A DNA stretch of 63,118 nucleotides, filler included, from Octopus bimaculoides (Eukaryota): the NCBI RefSeq assembly GCF_001194135.2. It is 7 parts of 6 records of this genome, joined end to end, with 100 filler letters (N's around TTAATTAATTAA, not from the genome) between each part and the next. Parts side by side here need not be neighbours in the genome. Positions count along the whole stretch, not along the records: positions 28,411 to 37,623 come from NC_069003.1; 6 more parts are not named here. The stretch is one strand, 5' to 3'. The notes below the pieces were generated by a model. That model was not told the origin of the DNA, made no database searches, and was given only the letters and a program-made list of their open reading frames with translations. Positions 16,190 to 37,723 of the stretch are shown piece by piece; the stretch's first letter is position 1, and each line of letters starts with the position of its first letter. The position numbers and the translations under genes are program-made.

Positions 16190-17010
16190 CGTCCGTCCAG
16201 CGCCCATCAACGCAGTTGGACGGTGTGGACTGGCTTCTCCAGGTGTCGAGCCGCAAGCCCACTGATTTTTTTCATGGTTAAACCACCTCGTAGTCCCTAT
16301 GTGTTTATGATCCGATGCCACTACGGTGACGTCGTTGGCATATCCCGACACGCATCTCCCATTCCTAGGTCACGCGGGATGCCTCTCAACGCCTCCAGTT
16401 TGTGTAGTAGTGGCTTGAGAGTCAGTACATACAAGAGATACGAGAGGGGGTAACCTTACCGGACCGAACGCATGGTGTTTAACGGCTCTGAGAGGTGACC
16501 GTTCACTCTGACCACTGAACAGATGTCGTTGTGCATTGTAGCGATCCAGCCCCTTAATACAGGCCCAAAACCAGCTGCCTTGAGGACCGTCGCCATGTAT
16601 ATGGTCGACTCTATCGAAAGCTTTAGACTGATCTAAATTGATCAGGGCCCCACCCCTGCCAGGTTCTTTAGCCACTTTCTCAATGATGTATCACATGAGG
16701 TGGAGGTTGTCGTGGATGGATCTTTTCTGGATAGCACATGTGTGTACCTCCCCTACCAGATCCCCGACGACAAGTGCCAACCTCGTAGCAAACACCTTGG
16801 CCAAAATTTTGAACTCTGCATTCAGCAGAGTTATGGGCCTAAAGTTGTGAATACAATCCCCCTTGTTCGTGTCTTTTCTCAGCTGCTACTCGGCTCACAA
16901 AACTAGGAATTCTCCCATTCTGTTGCCACTTGCAGTAAACGTTTGCAAAGAGGTCGCCGAACAAGTCTGGCATGTGAACGTAAAGCTCGTAGGGCAGACT
17001 ATCCAAACTA
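16190..17010 (-). mobile_element. L1/Tx1-like LINE reverse-transcriptase fragment
   Basis: Minus-strand frames give NFRPITLLNAEFKILAK, GALINLDQSKAFDRVDH and YANDVTVV (YADD-equivalent), interrupted by stops and frameshifts. Confidence 0.85.
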
Positions 17011-28278: not shown

Positions 28279-28619
28279 TAGAAAAGTTTATTAAAGCAGC
28301 AAAATGGCAGNNNNNNNNNNNNNNNNNNNNNNNNNNNNNNNNNNNNNNNNNNNNTTAATTAATTAANNNNNNNNNNNNNNNNNNNNNNNNNNNNNNNNNN
28401 NNNNNNNNNNAATGCTGGCTGTGTTATATAACAGAAGATGGCGAGGTGTGGTGGCGGTGTAGTGTTTGTTAAACTCCAGGCCAGCTTTGATCGAACAAAC
28501 CTAAGATCAAAGGTGTTCCAACCACGACCATCTCGACAGTATTCGTTGTCATGGTGGTGATAGTGGTAGCGGTGGTGGCAGCGATGATGAAAGGGACGAT
28601 GGTGGGGGTGGGGTGTTAT

Positions 28620-29112
28620 TGGTGTTATTATGCTTCTCTATAGCAGTGTGGGAGCATTCCATTTTCTCTGCCAGTTCCCTTGTCGTTTGACGAGAATTTT
28701 CGTGCAAAAGTTGGTTTAATCGCTCCTCATCGAACTCAACTGGACGTCCAGAACGAGGTGCGTCTTTGAGGTCAAAATTTCCATTTTTGAACTTGGCATA
28801 CCAATCACGAGTTGTTCTTTCAGCTATGGCACCCTCTCCATACACAGCAAAAATGTCGCGAGCAGCTTTCGCGGCCTTAGAACGTTGATTAAAAGCAAAA
28901 AGAAGGTGCCGAAAATGCTCGTTTTTCTTAACTTGACATTCCATTTTAATGATCTGAAAATAGACAAAAATTAACTAAAATTAACTAGAAAAAAAAATAG
29001 ATTCCAAAATGATTCAAAAATAGAATTCTCGAAATAAATAGATTCCAAAATTTAAAATCGCAATAAATTCTGAAATTAAAAAAAAACGGCGGGAATTTAG
29101 TTGCCAACCCAA
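28620..29112 (-). mobile_element. mariner element 5' end: TIR plus transposase N-terminus
   Basis: TA|TTGGGTTGGCAACTAA terminus at 29112-29114. ORF MECQVKKNEHFRHLLFAFNQRSKAAKAARDI..WYAKFKNGNFDLKDAPRSGRP..QTTRELA; truncated by a microsatellite. Confidence 0.9.
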
Positions 29113-29194
29113 TATATAAATACATATACAAGAGTAGGCAAGATAGGTTAGTTACTACAGTATCTATCCCGAGATAATATATCTTAAAGACATA

Positions 29195-29378
29195 CTGTAT
29201 TAAAAACACGATGAATATCGGAGGGCGACAAAAATTTCTCCCGTCCGAGTATGTGGATGACTGTGAGTGCGCGCCGCTGAGGAAGCCTAAGAAGGCCGAA
29301 ATGCTTCTAACATTTTTGTTGGCCGCTGCTATGATGAACGTTCGTCTCCCTCCGATATTTAATGCGTTTTTAACACAG
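29195..29378. mobile_element. short inverted-repeat-bounded element (~35-bp imperfect IRs) with a central hammerhead-like core
   Basis: Left arm ctgtattaaaaacacgatgaatatcggagggcgac vs right arm gtctccctccgatatttaatgcgtttttaacacag; CTGAGGA-AGCCTAAGAAGGCC-GAAA at 29277-29301. Confidence 0.55.
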
Positions 29379-29444
29379 CACGTCAATAAGAGATGCTACC
29401 TCAAGACAAATACCGCAGTAACTGGCCTATGTATATATTAAAGT

Positions 29445-29620
29445 GGAGGTGCGTGGCTTAGTGGTTAGGGTGTTGGATCCATGATCGTAAGATTGTGGTT
29501 TCGATTACTGGACCGGGCGTCACGTTGTGTTCTTGGGCAAAGCATTTCATTTCACGCTGCTCGAGTCCACTCAACTAGCAAAAATAAGTAAGCCAGCAAC
29601 GGATCGGCATCCTGTCCAGA
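29445..29620 (+). mobile_element. tRNA-derived SINE head (family C-like)
   Basis: gtggcttagtggttagggtg..gtttcgattactggaccggg (A/B boxes); related heads at 37285-37400 and 52585-52720. Confidence 0.65.
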
Positions 29621-30906
29621 TGGGGAATATACACGCCATTTTAACACTGGGGTCGATGTAATCGACTTAGCACCCCCACCCCACTCCACCCGGAATTGCT
29701 GGCCCTGTGCCAAAGTTTTAAACCAATATTCTTGTCTTGTCTGTGTCGTACGTTTATGTTATTAAATGGGACGACCGTTTGTATTTGGTGTTCTCTAGCG
29801 TTATTGATGGGGAAAGAGGCCACGGATTTTTGTCGGCGCTTCTTTCGGTCATATGTCGTGGGACCAAATTTCCAGCTGATTCAGCTAAGGCGATGATAAT
29901 TGTACAGCAACGACTGGAAGATGGCAAGAGGCTTTTTGTACTTGTTCTCTTCGCACGGCTTTGATTTGATAATGTCTCCATAACCTAGCGGTTCGGCAAA
30001 AGGACAACAATGTAATAAATAACAGAAATACAGAACCAAATTTTTATATATTTTTATATCTTTTAATGGTATGTGAAGCCGATGTGTTTGACTAAACTCT
30101 TAAAGGCGGTGCTCCAGCATGACCGCAATCCAATCGACGGAAACAAGTAAGGGGATAAAACAAAACAAAACAAAACAAGAAAAAAGATAAAAGAACGTGG
30201 GGGTCACGGGTGGAGGTGGAGGCGTGTTTTGTTTTGGTTCCTTTTGTTGATGGCATATTATCACCAAGGCAACGATACATAAATAGAAAACACCGCCGCC
30301 ACCACCACTACCACCACCACCACCACCGCCTACACATAAAAACCATCACCACTTACACAACCACTACCGCATTTTCATCATTCCACCGCACTCTGCCAGC
30401 AACATCCGTCTTCAACTGTTTCTGTTTGTTTGTTTGTTTGTTCCTAGCTTCCATCTTCAAAAGGTTGTAGGCGGAATATTTTGTTTCTTACAAGTTTTGT
30501 TGTTGTTGTTTTTGTTGGTGGTGGTGGTGGGGGCGGGGGTGTTGTTGATGTTGTAGTTGTACGTTCCTCGTGTCATCTCTCTAAACACACCCATTCAATT
30601 ACATCTTAGAAATGACGACGACGACGACGACGTTATTGTTGTTGTTGCTGTTGTTGTTGATGGTGATGTCGGCGGTGTTGATGACGATGGTGACGATGAT
30701 GATGATGATGATGATGATGATGACGATGATGATGATGATGACGATGACGACAATTATGATGATTTCACTATAAATACAATCGCGTCTTGAACTACACATG
30801 TTCAAAGCCATTCACAAAATGTGAGCGCGTGAGTGTGGGAAACATACATGTACTGCCACACCCTTCCCCCACTCCCTGTCATACACCCGTAAACATACGA
30901 GCATGC

Positions 30907-30957
<51 letters not shown>

Positions 30958-31666
30958 TAGATGTTTCTATGCGTGTGTACATAAATATGCCGAACGTACA
31001 CTTATACATATACATATATGGCTATATAATTATNNNNNNNNNNNNNNNNNNNNNNNNNNNNNNNNNNNNNNNNNNNNNNNNNNNNNNNNNNNNNNNNNNN
31101 NNNNNNNNNNNNNNNNNNNNNNNNNNNNNNNNNNNNNNNNNNNNNNNNNNNNNNNNNNNNNNNNNNNNNNNNNNNNNNNNNNNNNNNNNNNNNNNNNNNN
31201 NNNNNNNNNNNNNNNNNNNNNNNNNNNNNNNNNNNNNNNNNNNNNNNNNNNNNNNNNNNNNNNNNNNNNNNNNNNNNNNNNNNNNNNNNNNNNNNNNNNN
31301 NNNNNNNNNNNNNNNNNNNNNNNNNNNNNNNNNNNNNNNNNNNNNNNNNNNNNNNNNNNNNNNNNNNNNNNNNNNNNNNNNNNNNNNNNNNNNNNNNNNN
31401 NNNNNNNNNNNNNNNNNNNNNNNNNNNNNNNNNNNNNNNNNNNNNNNNNNNNNNNNNNNNNNNNNNNNNNNNNNNNNNNNNNNNACTAATGTATTGGGTG
31501 GGCGGGTTCAAGTGGTATTTTTTTACTTCTGTTATGTGGAGGGTGAGAGATGAATTTCGGGGTGTTGGGTTTGGTGGATATCACTTTTGAGGAATTTGCG
31601 TGCATACGTGTGTGCATGTGTATGTGTGCATGTGTGTGTGATGTGTGTTTGTGTTTGTGTTGTTTG

Positions 31667-31697
<31 letters not shown>

Positions 31698-32282
31698 TGT
31701 ATTTGTATGTCTGGATATGTATACGAGAATACAAATATACCTATATATATAAAGAGAGACGCAAAGTTTGGAAGAATTGAAAAGAATCTTCGGACGAAAC
31801 AGAAGCTCCGAGAAAGTACCTGTTGACGAGAGAAACTTTCTGAACAATAATAACTTGTTACTACACCACTCCGACATTAACTGCAACAACAAATATTACC
31901 AATATCGACAACAACATCAACTATACCAATAATATTAACAAGGACCCAGCGTATATTTTGGGTACTTAAAAGATATTGCAGTCTGTTTCTGTGTGGTTTT
32001 TCTCCTTCCAGTCTTATTATTATTATTGTTGTTATTATTAATAATAATAATACTATAAACACACGTTTGGGGTAACTTTTTAGATAACTCAGGTTCACCT
32101 CTCAAGCTCCCATAAAACCCCGCTACTTAAACCAAACGAGACGAAACCCTAAAGAACTTTCATACTTCCATTGTGTATCTCTGAACTCTACTGTCCTATA
32201 GTAAATTATATTAATCTATATTCCAAATATAACATACTTTACGGCACTACACTGTATAACACAAAGAAACACGCTGTGTTGT

Positions 32283-32290
32283 TATATATA
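32283..32290 (+). promoter_or_regulatory. possible TATA box of the Argos-like gene
   Basis: TATATATA in non-microsatellite context about 85 bp upstream of the ATG; positional inference only. Confidence 0.3.
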
Positions 32291-32374
32291 CTGCAACTCC
32301 ACGGTTTGTTTTTGCATCTACATCTCAGCTGAGATTCAGCGTCCTAACTGTGATTCACCGAAACAGATTCAACA

Positions 32375-32488
32375 ATGGCCACTCCATCAATACTGTACTG
32401 CTTCTTAATCTATGCTGTCGTGCAAATCATCTCTGGACATCAGGCTCGTGTGCCGTACAGGGTGTCAAATCTGATGAACGTCGTTCTT
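32375..32488 (+). CDS. first coding exon (signal peptide) of secreted Argos/giant-lens-like protein
   Basis: ACAATGG Kozak context. MATPSILYCFLIYAVVQIISG|HQARVPYRVSNLMNVVL has a hydrophobic h-region and a small residue at the likely cleavage site. Ends at a phase-0 CTT|GTAAGT donor, matching the phase-0 acceptor at 36696. Confidence 0.75.
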
Positions 32489-32519
32489 GTAAGTATCACA
32501 TTTATTATTATCATCATCA

Positions 32520-32572
<53 letters not shown>

Positions 32573-32822
32573 TCCTTTTTTTTTTCTTCTTTCTTCAAAT
32601 ATTCTTCCATTTCTCGCCGAGTGTTTTCCGTACACCTAGGGCAGAGAAACTCGTTGTATGCATTCCCAGTTTACACACGCAAATTCACTGGTAAAATATG
32701 TATGTAAAAAAATTAATAAATAAATAAATTCATGAATGGATGTTGTTTTCACAGCGATAATGCTCTTCTCAGTACTTGAGTCGTTCCAGTTAACACGATT
32801 TATTATTATTATTATAATTGTA

Positions 32823-32879
<57 letters not shown>

Positions 32880-32992
32880 TGCCTTTCATCCTTTTGGGAT
32901 TGATAAATTAAGTACCAGTGAAACACTGGGGGTCGATGTAATTGACTAGTCCCCTCCCCCAAATTTCAGACCTTGTGCCTGTAGTAGAAAGA

Positions 32993-33040
<48 letters not shown>

Positions 33041-33084
33041 TACTTTTAATCTGCATGGTTGTTATAATTAGTCGCCGAAACACA

Positions 33085-33395
33085 TTCAGCGTCCTAGGGC
33101 GAGTGAAGGATAAGAGATGTTACAGTATGACTGGAAGCTTCTCTGAGACATGGTTATCCTGGGATATTATCTAGATGTTTCTGACACCCCGTTCTTATCA
33201 TACTAAGGACACCCACAATAACAAGAACAGTTCTCGCTTTAAGATGCGAGATCTTTTGTATTTCTGTTTCCAGGTCCTTATATCTACTCAATTTGTCAAA
33301 TTTCCTTACAGATATATTTTTATCAGTAGGGACACTCATCTTTCTACTGAGTTGGAGTCTTTGGCTCATCGTGAAATTGTATCTTTATTGTTTTA
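33085..33395 (-). mobile_element. 3' end of a LINE with a restriction-like endonuclease (RLE) domain
   Basis: MSVPTDKNISVRKFDKLSRYKDLETEIQKISHLKARTVLVIVGVL; same domain as at 53470-53872. Confidence 0.75.
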
Positions 33396-35199
33396 TTTTT
33401 CTATAAATATTTCCATAATCATTGCTCTGATCAACTTCCTGGCCTAGTAATTGCTTTCATTTCCTTTAAACATGTTAACCAGCTTCTCTTTCCAAACATA
33501 TCGTTTCTCTTTTGAGCTCCCTGCTCGTCATAAGCCTTTATATTCTAACGGCTTCTTTCCTCGAACTGCTGTCCTCAGAAACTCATTATCATCGTTTTGT
33601 TTTCATCTGGTCTACAATATTCGGTCCTTTAAGCTTTCTGTCAATCAACTTCTTTTGTTTTTGTAAGCCCCTTTAAGCCCCTTCTTTATATACTACAATG
33701 ACCTCAAGCCCTGTTCGGGGAAAAGTCGTATAAAAAGAATAATAATGCGTCGAACTGCCAGAATAGTCGAACAGAATTCTTAACAGCATTTCTTCCGGTT
33801 CTTTACGTTCTGAATTCAAATTGTACCAAGATGGGAAATTATCAGGAATCATATTATTATATTTAGGTGCACTCCTCCGCATTGTAAGTTCAATTCTTGT
33901 TTCCCTCATCTCAGTTGGGTACCCCAGGTTAACAAACATAAAAAAAAACTCTTGAATACCATCACAAAACTCACTGAGTGATGAAGACCGTTTTCTTTGG
34001 TATGTATATGAGATTACTCGCGGGGATATACTCACACATACCGTTTATAATATAGGGTTATGCAAAGCGAGATTCTTAACCACACAGCCTAAAGGGAATT
34101 GATTCGAATGAAATTTGGTTGCTATTTCTAGCATGTCCAGCGACCACGAATACCTTTCCTTGTTGATTCGTCACTTGTTTTTAATGTTGTTTTCCTTTGT
34201 TACTAAGATACAAAGACCGTACACTGAAATTTGAGTTATATTTCGCTATTAATGGTTAATCGGCAGCGCAGGTTCTCAACGTGTGTGGTACCACCCCTAG
34301 GGGCGCGCTGGGTATATCGAAGACTTTAGGGGTAGTGAATGGGGTGGTGAAGTAACATAATTAACATACTAAATTTCACCTATAGCAGTAATTATTATAC
34401 ATAATAAAACTAGTAATGGTTATTAAAATGAAATGAAATCTCATCAAGCACAGGGAAGTCATTAACTTGCAATGTATGAAGTTAATTTACAGTTTCTGTC
34501 TTTATTAATTTCTTTTTTATCTGTTCACTGTTAAAAGCTCATGCAATCCATTTTTAGAGCAACATTTATAAACTGTCATCCATGTCAAATTAGTTTAGTC
34601 GTGATATCTCACTCACCACTTAGATGGGTGCAAGGCGTAACAACTACGTAGAAAGTGGGGCGCTACAGACAAAATGGTTAAGAGCCATTGTTCTACTGAT
34701 AAAGTATTTATAGTCGGATTTACTTTCCTGTTGCTCTTCACCTCATAGGATACATTGAAGAGAAGGGGAGTAAAACAACTGCTTTCGATGGGAACCTGAT
34801 CGATCTGAATCGATTTAAAGCATTCAACTGAGTCTACTATCAACATATACAGATGATCTACACTACAGTCAATTTAAGTCTGTTTTTAGAGGCTGCATCG
34901 CTTCAATATACAGCAGAATCTTAAAGTGGTCGGAGTAAATGGTCGCTTAACAGAACTGTTTCGATTCACGTGCGGATGTCTATCAAGATTCATTGTTCAA
35001 GTAGCGGTGTTAAGGAGCATACTTAACTTCGAAAAGTGAGATGTTTGGAGTAAGAGACAGAAAGCAGGATAAATCAGCGGACTCGACAACTGGGAAGGGA
35101 CATCCATGCCCGTCTGCGTCATGGATCACTGGATTGAGGGACTTGGTAAAATGCTTGAGGTACAATTCTAATCAAATTTCCAGATGAATAGAAACTGAG

Positions 35200-35420
35200 G
35201 TGATGTTACAAGCAAGGTGGCCGTTGGGTGACAGTGTGGTTGTAAGTTTTTAGTCAAGAAGAGTATTTTCCTCTGTCCTGTGGCTATGGTGAAAACCGTT
35301 ATGTGGCAATCAAGCCAGAATGTCCCTCAAGCTCTCGTTGATTTTTTCAAGTTCTACTTGAAGAGGGAGATGAGTGTTTATCAAAAGATGGGTGAAAGTA
35401 GTGAACATGACCTGAGTGAA
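35200..35420 (+). mobile_element. possible L1/Tx1 ORF2 C-terminal fragment
   Basis: KKSIFLCPVAMVKTVMWQ..ALVDFFKFYLKREM resembles the Tx1-type ORF2 tail; resemblance only. Confidence 0.35.
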
Positions 35421-35721
35421 TGGAGCTACACTCAACTGAGAAATGACAACCAACAAAACACCTTTTAAAGTCACAGTAATCTTGGATCGGTGGTGTTCCT
35501 TAATAGGTACTAGGTGGTGGTCTATATCTTCGACGATGCAAGTAATTCATCTGTAGATTGTGAACCACTTTTTCTGGGTTTTTTCGTTCTCTTTCCATTT
35601 ATCTGATTTCAGTATAAACTGTTAGAAATTTTGTAACCTGTCATTAACTTGTTCTTTCATTCGTCGCCCTTTTATTTAAATCATAATAATGTTTTTTCTA
35701 AATAAATAAATAATTATTAGT

Positions 35722-35885
35722 ATTGGCATTTCGTCTATCTTTACGTTCTGAGCTCAAATTCCGCCGCGACTGACTTTGCTTTTCATCCTTCCGGGATTGA
35801 AATAAGTACAAGTTGAGTACTGTATACGACTTTCCCCACTTCCTCGAAATTCCAGGACTTGTTTCTATAGTAGAAATGATTATTA
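35722..35885 (+). mobile_element. degenerate family A SINE in intron 1
   Basis: ggcatttcgtc..acgttctgagctcaaattccgccg..tttcatcctt..ctatagtagaaa, followed by an (ATT/ATC)n tail. Confidence 0.7.
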
Positions 35886-35897
35886 TAATTATTATTG

Positions 35898-35934
<37 letters not shown>

Positions 35935-36200
35935 TATTATTATTATTGTTCAGTAGTTTTATTTTTATGACGTGCTTTCACTTCACTACCGAGCGCAGCT
36001 CTGTGTGCCTTGGGTATGTGCTGTGGTTTGCTGTGATGCTCTTATGGTTACTGTATTGAAAGTGTTTTGCGTAGGATGTGTGCAGTGCCCAGTAGTGCAA
36101 TTTTCTGTATGTTATAGATATTTGTAAGTCATGGTGGTTTTGTTATGTATTTGTCTGAATCTATTCCCCGATATTCAGAGGTTTGTTTCTGCCCAGGTAC
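35935..36200 (-). mobile_element. RLE-LINE extreme 3' end (copy 1)
   Basis: Reverse complement encodes IYNIQKIALLGTAHILRKTLSIQ*, then a 3' UTR and an (AAT)n tail. Confidence 0.7.
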
Positions 36201-36449
36201 TTTTATAACTGTTTCAACATCTAACTCAACGGAATTTGAGTTTACCAATTTCCCTTTCTTCGAAGTGGCCTTGGAGCATTTATCAGGACCAACGCTATCC
36301 TGCTGTCATCACTAAATACTTTTACAATACATAATAGGTCTTCAAGCTCATCATTGTCGTTGCTAATAAACTTTTAAGCCATTCTTATAAAACTGATAGC
36401 TTGTTTTCTTGTTGTCAATTTTATAACCATACTATTGTTACTATCGTTA

Positions 36450-36626
36450 CCATTATTTAGTAGCTTTATTTTTATTACGTGCTTTTGCTGTACTGCCGAG
36501 CGCAGTTCTTTGTAATTTGGGTATGTGCTGTGGTTTGTTTAAGTGTTGCTATTTTTACTGTATTGAAAGTGCCTAACATAGGGTGTGTGCGGTGTCTAGT
36601 AGTGCTATTTTCTGTATGTTATATAC
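36450..36626 (-). mobile_element. RLE-LINE extreme 3' end (copy 2)
   Basis: Diverged repeat of 35970-36120; encodes IYNIQKIALLDTAHTL. Confidence 0.65.
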
Positions 36627-36695
36627 ATACATAAGTCCCGTTTTTGCTGCTGCTGTTGTTGTTGGTACTATGTTATTGATTTATTGTTTTTACAG

Positions 36696-37079
36696 CCTCA
36701 AAGGTATATACCCGTCTGTCCCACGCTCGATCACGTATGCGGCCGTGTCTGGAGGAAAGGCATCTACATACAACACATCTGCTCCTGTCCAGGCAAAACA
36801 CAATGTTCCATGGAATGGGATGATAGCGTAACAGGCCGTTCGTTCCAAGTGAAGAAGTACGTCCAAGACAAATATTGCGGCCCTGCCAAAGTGGAAAGAG
36901 TGTGCGCTCCTAAAGAAATCTCATTCAGCGTGGTTTCGGCCATCAAACCGCAAAGAGAGGTCTACCGCCAAGGTGTCGTCTGCTTGTGCAAGTCTCCATA
37001 CGGGGTTCACCAGAATGCCATCTATGAACTCCGAGACAGAAACGATTTAAAATATGTGCACGTCTTTTCTTGTGGTAAA
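36696..37079 (+). CDS. internal coding exon of Argos/giant-lens-like cysteine-rich protein (two clamp domains, 10 Cys)
   Basis: Acceptor ttgtttttacag|, donor AAA|GTGAGT, 384 nt, phase 0-0, no stops. PVCPTLDHVC..CSCPGKTQC..KYC..RVC..CLC..VFSC reproduces the 6+4 Cys spacing of Drosophila Argos domains 1 and 2 (recalled as LPVCARNTVC..CRCP..GGC..KMC..PVC..CRC..LFAC). Confidence 0.85.
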
Positions 37080-37723
37080 GTGAGTAGTCTTTTGTCTTTT
37101 TTTACTTGTTTCAGTCATTTACGGGGGGTCACGTTTGTGTACTGCTTTCAAGGGCTCTTGCAATTAGTCTGGTACTTATTTTATCGACCTGTTTGCAAGA
37201 AATGATTAAGTTTATCAGAGTCAGTGCTGTCTTAATGCATGGGCACACTAGACAGTTTCCTTGGGACAACCCGCATGAAAGTACCTGGCCTAGTGGTTAG
37301 GGTATCGGCCACATGATCATAGCGTTTTGGGTTCGATTCCTGGACTAGGCAAAGCGTTGTTTCCTTGATCAAGACGCATTATTTTATGTTACTCCAATTT
37401 ACTCATTCGAAAGAGAGTAGCAGGCATTTCCTTCGCAAGCTCTTCAAAGGACGCAACAATGATCAAGACCGTCTTAGCAACATTATTATAGGCCCTCGGA
37501 TAAATCCGTGCACTGAGACCTATAGTGTTTATTTACTGGCAGCAAGCCATATCACACATATATCAGAACTGGCCCGTTCCGAGAATCGAACACACAATTT
37601 CCCGATTGTAAGCCATACACCTCNNNNNNNNNNNNNNNNNNNNNNNNNNNNNNNNNNNNNNNNNNNNTTAATTAATTAANNNNNNNNNNNNNNNNNNNNN
37701 NNNNNNNNNNNNNNNNNNNNNNN

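Follow-up and report, generated by a model that had tools for sequence, protein, structure and literature searches.

The Octopus bimaculoides gene LOC106874624 very likely encodes a three-domain, Argos-like precursor of the secreted type that would act as an endogenous extracellular binder. Its first two coding exons lie at positions 32375-37079 of the window, by which we mean the whole stretch of DNA analysed (63,118 nucleotides, joined from parts of RefSeq assembly GCF_001194135.2), in the piece taken from NC_069003.1. We assign the product with high confidence, in both family and fold, to the protostome family of Argos, giant-lens and scoloptoxin-11, in which it would be a compact member with two-finger toxin (2FTX) domains. 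The gene model and the protostome-wide family are already on record, and what we add is the correct annotation link, not a discovery. Our literature searches turned up nothing published on this cephalopod gene.

Gene model and conservation

LOC106874624 is a gene of three coding exons: one for the signal peptide, one for domains D1 and D2 and one for domain D3 (coordinates in Table 1). Downstream of an in-frame stop, the earliest start codon is the ATG at 32375 (context caacaATGg), and exon 1 runs from there to ...GTCGTTCTT/GTAAGT at 32488. Exon 2 is bounded by ttttacag/CCT at 36696 and by ...GGTAAA/GTGAGT at 37079. Spliced in frame, exons 1 and 2 give a product of 166 amino acids, in which a hydrophobic N-terminus precedes a stretch of 128 residues with 10 cysteines. 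Residues 1-166 of the 234-residue protein XP_014777905.1 (P0016; UniProt A0A0L8GUZ4) have exactly this sequence, exon 1 accounting for residues 1-38 and exon 2 for residues 39-166. RefSeq names the protein 'U-scoloptoxin(11)-Sm2a' (formerly uncharacterized protein LOC106874624 isoform X2), and we found it within the 90% cluster of an Octopus vulgaris protein described below. The whole piece, 28411-37623, aligns to O. bimaculoides chromosome CM046623.1 at 100% identity. Its label as isoform X2 points to a former model for an isoform X1; our searches turned up no other protein of O. bimaculoides.

The third coding exon (LPKC...HYCSA plus the stop codon), which carries D3 with 6 cysteines, lies at 16800-17006 of locus L002, where 15249 corresponds to window position 37623. 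It is thus ~1551 nucleotides beyond the edge of the piece, and its peptide gave no match when compared with the piece by tblastn. Because exon 3 is outside the piece, the window holds the signal peptide, D1 and D2 only. A first-pass annotation, made from the sequence alone, had described a hidden gene split across two exons. Its exon coordinates and its in-frame splice between 32488 and 36696 proved exact, and the 384-nucleotide, phase 0-0 exon with 10 cysteines was confirmed. Both of its exons are genuine, as coding exons 1 and 2, but a third exists, and the gene is not hidden, being annotated in both RefSeq and UniProt.

A rule-based call predicts an N-terminal signal peptide, as in the secreted proteins of the Argos family. 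Kyte-Doolittle means over 11 residues reach 2.68 within residues 5-20, the small residues S-G come next, and the structural model described below has an N-terminal helix at residues 2-19. The mature protein, as computed, would have ~213 amino acids, a mass of 24.5 kDa, a pI of ~9.2 and 16 cysteines, with no N-glycosylation sequon.

The gene is conserved among octopods and in another cephalopod lineage, and it is under strong purifying selection. The top match in the homologue search was an O. vulgaris 'hypothetical predicted protein' of 234 amino acids (97% identity, 100% coverage); the search also returned a 237-residue protein of Argonauta hians (71% identity) and the protein P0003, whose sequence was predicted from an RNA-seq assembly (67% identity). 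All three are continuous over the proposed junction of exons 1 and 2 (…NVVLPQRY…), and protein identity across distant cephalopod lineages is 59-70%. The O. vulgaris gene has three exons, with all GT/AG sites and phases as in O. bimaculoides and an orthologous intron 1 of ~5.7 kb. Transcript evidence comes from an RNA-seq contig of another cephalopod (SRR27666067; L003, 1529 nucleotides), in which the orthologous coding sequence is unbroken over both junctions. The database version of P0003 (266 amino acids; L003 318-1118) is 33 residues overlong, the true TGA stop after ...HVCSA having been called as Trp; the real product has 233 amino acids and matches its cluster mate P0017.

In exon 2, 15 synonymous changes and 0 non-synonymous ones separate O. 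bimaculoides from O. vulgaris (dN, the non-synonymous rate, 0; dS, the synonymous rate, 0.21), and dN/dS for the mature protein is 0.02. Exon 1 is relaxed, as expected for a signal peptide (dN/dS 0.76), and the flanking introns are 77-91% identical with many indels. Each octopus species yielded one protein in the searches made, and an exhaustive profile search of 1.84e9 proteins revealed no divergent cephalopod paralogue. The gene therefore appears to be single-copy as far as these searches reach.

Family assignment and predicted fold

The family was described by Khilji et al. 2025 (Protein Sci 34:e70333), who solved the structure of conotoxin Tx33.1, found that it resembles D1-D2 of Argos and named the domain the 2FTX fold (PMC12514838). 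They report ~1800 protostome 2FTX proteins in 12 clusters, mostly secreted and three-domain, without the disordered insertions of Argos; among them are endogenous proteins of the molluscs Pomacea, Conus and Aplysia (XP_005110430.1) and a centipede scoloptoxin that is an Argos-like protein with three 2FTX domains (PMC12514838). Compact three-domain proteins fall within the Argos cluster (PMC12514838), so the long N-terminus and the D1 insert define insect Argos and not the family.

The octopus protein shares the cysteine frame of Argos almost exactly. In an alignment of 11 sequences from cephalopods, crustaceans and fly Argos, all 16 cysteines (6+4+6) are invariant, as are P44, K97 and L167. 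The spacings between cysteines are 6,13,1,5,23 / 25,1,27 / 5,22,1,5,24 in octopus, nearly coincident with 5,14,1,5,21 / 24,1,26 / 5,20,1,5,26 in the Argos core. Similarity to this core was detected by BLASTP (25% identity over 179 amino acids, E 3e-6) and, using an alignment of cephalopod sequences only, by hhalign against the crystallised Argos core (90.8% probability, E 1.2e-6, 156 columns), while a profile built from cephalopod and crustacean sequences matched 3c9a/3cgu, 'Protein giant-lens', at E 1.9e-33. When the full mature protein was aligned to the Argos core, its score (z 11.4) was above those of 1000/1000 full shuffles and was reached by only 1/1000 shuffles in which the cysteines were held fixed, which indicates that the similarity extends beyond the cysteine frame.

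In the exhaustive search of 1.84e9 proteins, the cephalopod-only profile matched crustacean proteins at E 6e-7 to 6e-4. One of these is an amphipod protein, P0012, whose name is 'Antagonist of EGFR signaling Argos [Trinorchestia]' and whose score on Pfam PF11581 is 148.8 bits; another is a barnacle protein with the RefSeq name U-scoloptoxin(11)-Sm7a-like, which shares a 90%-identity cluster with a protein that UniProt calls giant-lens. The cephalopod orthologue P0003 itself clears the threshold of the Pfam Argos family PF11581 (27.9 bits against a cut-off of 25, E 2.6e-6), with a match that includes D2. At E <= 1e-3, the cephalopod profile reached no gastropod proteins.

The fold was predicted with AlphaFold2 (AF2) run without templates. 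The word-indexed homologue searches gave just 3-6 proteins and hence a shallow alignment, and with four cephalopod sequences the model was poor (mean predicted local distance difference test score, pLDDT, of 41). With an alignment of 8 sequences, pLDDT rose to 63.5 and the model took on an all-beta hairpin architecture. A Foldseek search of the latter model against the PDB returned four matches at E <= 1e-3, all of them Argos (3cgu_B, 3cgu_A, 3c9a_B and 3c9a_A; E 8e-10 to 5e-9, probability 1.00, template-modelling score 0.43-0.51, ~210 columns), with the next match at E 0.2. Even for the cephalopod-only model, the four Argos chains came top, weakly (E 4e-3 to 3e-2), and uPAR was fifth. As modelled, the protein would thus consist of three consecutive two-finger beta-hairpin domains, with cysteines in a 6+4+6 arrangement, that match the crystal fold of Argos.

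Several observations weigh against this assignment. The window product and the O. vulgaris and Argonauta proteins had no match to Pfam Argos PF11581 at E <= 10, and a cephalopod-only hidden Markov model (HMM) built from four sequences found no Argos match among the PDB sequences. Exon 2 alone is marginal against the Argos core (z 3.4), its score being reached by 33/1000 cysteine-fixed shuffles, and identity to fly Argos is only ~25%. Confidence in the AF2 model that recovered Argos is only moderate, at pLDDT 63.5, and the alignment behind it contained an Argos-family member. Finally, orthology to Argos proper is uncertain: of the 12 sequence clusters in the family, only that of Argos has a known function, and the C. 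elegans member M6.4 can be knocked out with no phenotype (PMC12514838). Direct searches are weak, as was also seen when phmmer of the product against PDB sequences gave no Argos match, and the link to Argos is solid at the profile and full-length level.

Other candidates that surfaced in these searches were set aside. The best matches of the PDB phmmer and HMM searches, a glutathione transferase and anillin, were at chance level, and the Pfam match of TMEM62_C to the window product was sub-threshold (17 versus 21 bits) and judged to be chance. Bacterial fibronectin-III proteins (P0006-9 and P0014) gave 5-9 matches apiece (E from 2e-6 to 9e-4), only through positions 65-107 of the A1 profile (approximately window 36770-36900) and in repeats, and we regard them as spurious and repeat-driven. 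The family profile also weakly matched the CART neuropeptide (1hy9_A, E 0.006), with a faint signal for Pfam CART, at approximately window 36708-36800 in the first D1 finger. The common pattern, LPxC..xC....C.CP..T.C, is probably one of cysteine spacing only.

These results bear on most of what the first-pass annotation had proposed about the protein. Structure and profile searches were run as a refutation test of its Argos fold, and both recovered Argos. The 6+4+6 cysteine pattern of Argos, which it had matched to its exon for domains 1 and 2, holds for all three domains and across cephalopods, crustaceans and fly Argos. Its description of a compact version is accurate, as the protein has neither the long N-terminal region nor the D1 insert, and the link to scoloptoxin-11 that it had drawn is borne out by the RefSeq name, by the same cysteine frame in the SLPTX11 family (PMC4379518) and by the survey of Khilji et al. 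(PMC12514838).

Proposed function and alternative explanations

Argos uses D2 and D3 to clamp the EGF domain of an epidermal growth factor receptor (EGFR) ligand and keep it away from the receptor (Klein et al. 2004, 2008, via PMC12514838), and D3 is required for the binding of Spitz (PMC12514838). D3 is present in the octopus gene too. By analogy, the octopus protein would be secreted and act as an endogenous extracellular binding protein; D2 and D3 would close as a clamp on an EGFR ligand's EGF domain, and sequestration of the ligand would damp EGFR signalling. Khilji et al. likewise speculate that some members of the family regulate EGFR signalling (PMC12514838). We tentatively regard Argos-type sequestration of EGF ligands as the single most likely mechanism. 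That the cephalopod protein is a functional counterpart of Argos, serving as a diffusible sink for EGF ligands in neural or eye development, is conceivable but somewhat doubtful.

If the cephalopod protein does act in this way, ligand sequestration would be no peculiarity of insects but an ancestral means by which protostomes tune EGFR signalling. The textbook example of a growth-factor pathway inhibited through ligand trapping rather than receptor block is Argos, which to our knowledge stood for years without recognised relatives outside insects. A compact, single-copy and constrained cephalopod member is a convenient candidate for testing the age and spread of the ligand-trap mechanism.

Almost as likely as the Argos mechanism is that the octopus protein shares the fold and family and has another partner, as an endogenous secreted binder of a non-EGF ligand or receptor, for example as a neuronal modulator. 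Proteins with finger folds, including Ly6/uPAR, the ectodomains of activin and TGF-beta receptors and Lynx-type modulators, bind varied partners, and after Argos the cephalopod-only model has uPAR as its nearest structural neighbour. Outside the cysteine frame, identity to Argos is only ~25%. Most of the ~1800 members of the 12 clusters have no known function, with M6.4 again as a case in which knock-outs are silent, and the Aplysia member is enriched in ganglia, its transcript being highest in the pedal ganglia (PMC12514838). Set against this, Argos alone in the family has an endogenous function that has been demonstrated, and this function depends on the three-domain architecture, which is kept here together with D3; moreover, the best non-cephalopod relatives of the octopus protein include strong scorers on Pfam Argos.

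Recruited toxins typically evolve rapidly and belong to expanded families, and we consider it unlikely that the octopus protein serves in saliva or venom as a scoloptoxin-11-type toxin, such as a Kv-channel blocker or anticoagulant from the posterior salivary gland. Octopods are venomous, the RefSeq product name is that of a scoloptoxin, and the cysteine frame is identical to that of SLPTX11, whose activities include Kv antagonism and anticoagulation (PMC4379518; PMC7232367). The RefSeq label, however, is derived from similarity alone and should be read with caution, as it is no evidence of a toxin. The sole octopus paper we found that names a scoloptoxin has SSD14 among posterior-salivary-gland transcripts (in an appendix) and no scoloptoxin-11. 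The octopus gene shows none of the expansion, rapid change or truncation that marks venom-type evolution: one copy per species was detected, identity holds up over distant cephalopod lineages, and exon 2 has only synonymous differences from O. vulgaris. Among cone-snail proteins, conservation is far higher in the endogenous Argos-like members than in the toxins related to them, so that the conserved paralogues are the endogenous ones (PMC12514838). Both the low dN/dS of the mature protein and the apparent single copy speak more for an endogenous signalling role than for a venom toxin. Of the two functions that the first-pass annotation had suggested, an EGF-binding decoy and a secreted gland protein, the second is disfavoured by the selection pattern if it means a gland toxin.

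The last alternative, that the exons are a chance open reading frame (ORF) or a decaying pseudogene, might be entertained from their setting as small islands in repeat-rich, AT-rich DNA, with a mariner fragment and microsatellites near and the last exon absent from the window, but it is effectively refuted by selection and transcript evidence, given the intact coding sequence and conserved splice sites in two Octopus species, the strong purifying selection, the Argonauta orthologue and the transcription of an orthologue in another cephalopod.

Other elements in the piece

The introns of LOC106874624 and the DNA upstream of it contain several repeats (Table 1). The first of the microsatellites in intron 1 begins 14 nucleotides past the donor of exon 1. 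In one pair of dispersed repeats (37286-37393 and 29449-29640), a tRNA-like GGTTCGATTCC box hints at a short interspersed nuclear element of tRNA origin; ARAGORN called no tRNA on this repeat. In the mariner ORF, the HTH_48 DNA-binding domain is followed by a tail rich in Pro and Ser, which marks it as a transposase fragment rather than a complete element. An assembly gap (a run of N) at 31034-31484, ~0.9 kb upstream of exon 1, blinds analysis of the promoter and 5' untranslated region there.

Table 1 Features of LOC106874624 and repeats in the piece, in window coordinates
Feature	Position	Strand	Description
Coding exon 1	32375..32488	+	38 codons; start codon, signal peptide and short linker; phase 0 end, CTT/GTAAGT
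Predicted signal peptide	32375..32437	+	Residues 1-21 (MATPSILYCFLIYAVVQIISG); cleavage predicted after S-G
Intron 1	32489..36695	+	4207 nt, phase 0, GT..AG; microsatellites and dispersed repeats
Coding exon 2	36696..37079	+	384 nt, 128 codons, phase 0-0; two-finger domains D1 and D2, 10 Cys
D1 Cys frame	36717..36878	+	C46, C53, C67, C69, C75, C99; 6 Cys; spacings 6, 13, 1, 5, 23
D2 Cys frame	36903..37073	+	C108, C134, C136, C164; 4 Cys; spacings 25, 1, 27
Intron 2, first 544 nt	37080..37623	+	Donor GTGAGT; piece ends inside intron
(TTA)n/(ATT)n microsatellites	32502-32572, 32800-32879, 32993-33040		16-27 units; in intron 1
Short dispersed repeats	32878-32947, 35722-35822, 30100-30150; 37286-37393, 29449-29640		Each in at least 7 places in the 28-kb O. 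vulgaris locus
Mos1/mariner transposase fragment	28549-28944	-	131-aa ORF; N-terminal HTH_48, E 4.7e-16

Comparison with known systems

Argos (giant-lens) of Drosophila melanogaster (3C9A, 3CGU; PF11581) is secreted and consists of three two-finger domains with 6+4+6 cysteines, and the octopus protein is predicted to be alike. Fly Argos also has a disordered N-terminal region of 122 residues and a D1 insert of 119 residues, which were cut for crystallisation (PMC12514838). The octopus protein is without both: only 24 residues separate the predicted cleavage site from the first cysteine, and D1 has no insert.

Two groups of venom proteins share parts of this architecture. The centipede SLPTX11 proteins (kappa-scoloptoxin Ssd1b, U-SLPTX11-Sm2a), compared through their published pattern, C-C-CxC-C-C-C-CxC-C-C-C-CxC-C-C (PMC4379518), have a 16-cysteine frame identical to that of octopus. 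They are venom components with truncations and insertions and 6-19 cysteines, whereas the octopus gene is apparently single-copy and under purifying selection. The two-finger conotoxins (MLSML, MMLFM and related superfamilies; Tx33.1) are, in their D1-D2 fold and disulfide pattern, the counterpart of octopus exon 2. They lack D3, are encoded by four exons with intron phases 0,2,0 and evolve fast (PMC12514838), whereas the octopus protein, which is conserved, includes D3.

The gastropod Argos-like genes encode three compact domains and a signal peptide and are highly conserved by comparison with the related toxins, and the octopus gene is alike in all of these respects. In gastropods the gene is divided into four exons (phases 0,1,0), arranged as signal / D1a / D1b+D2 / D3, in which a phase-1 intron splits D1 (PMC12514838). 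In Octopus there are three coding exons instead (phases 0,0), D1 and D2 share one of them, and the phase-1 intron in D1 is absent. Common to gastropods and Octopus are a signal peptide on its own first exon, D3 on its own last exon and outer introns in phase 0.

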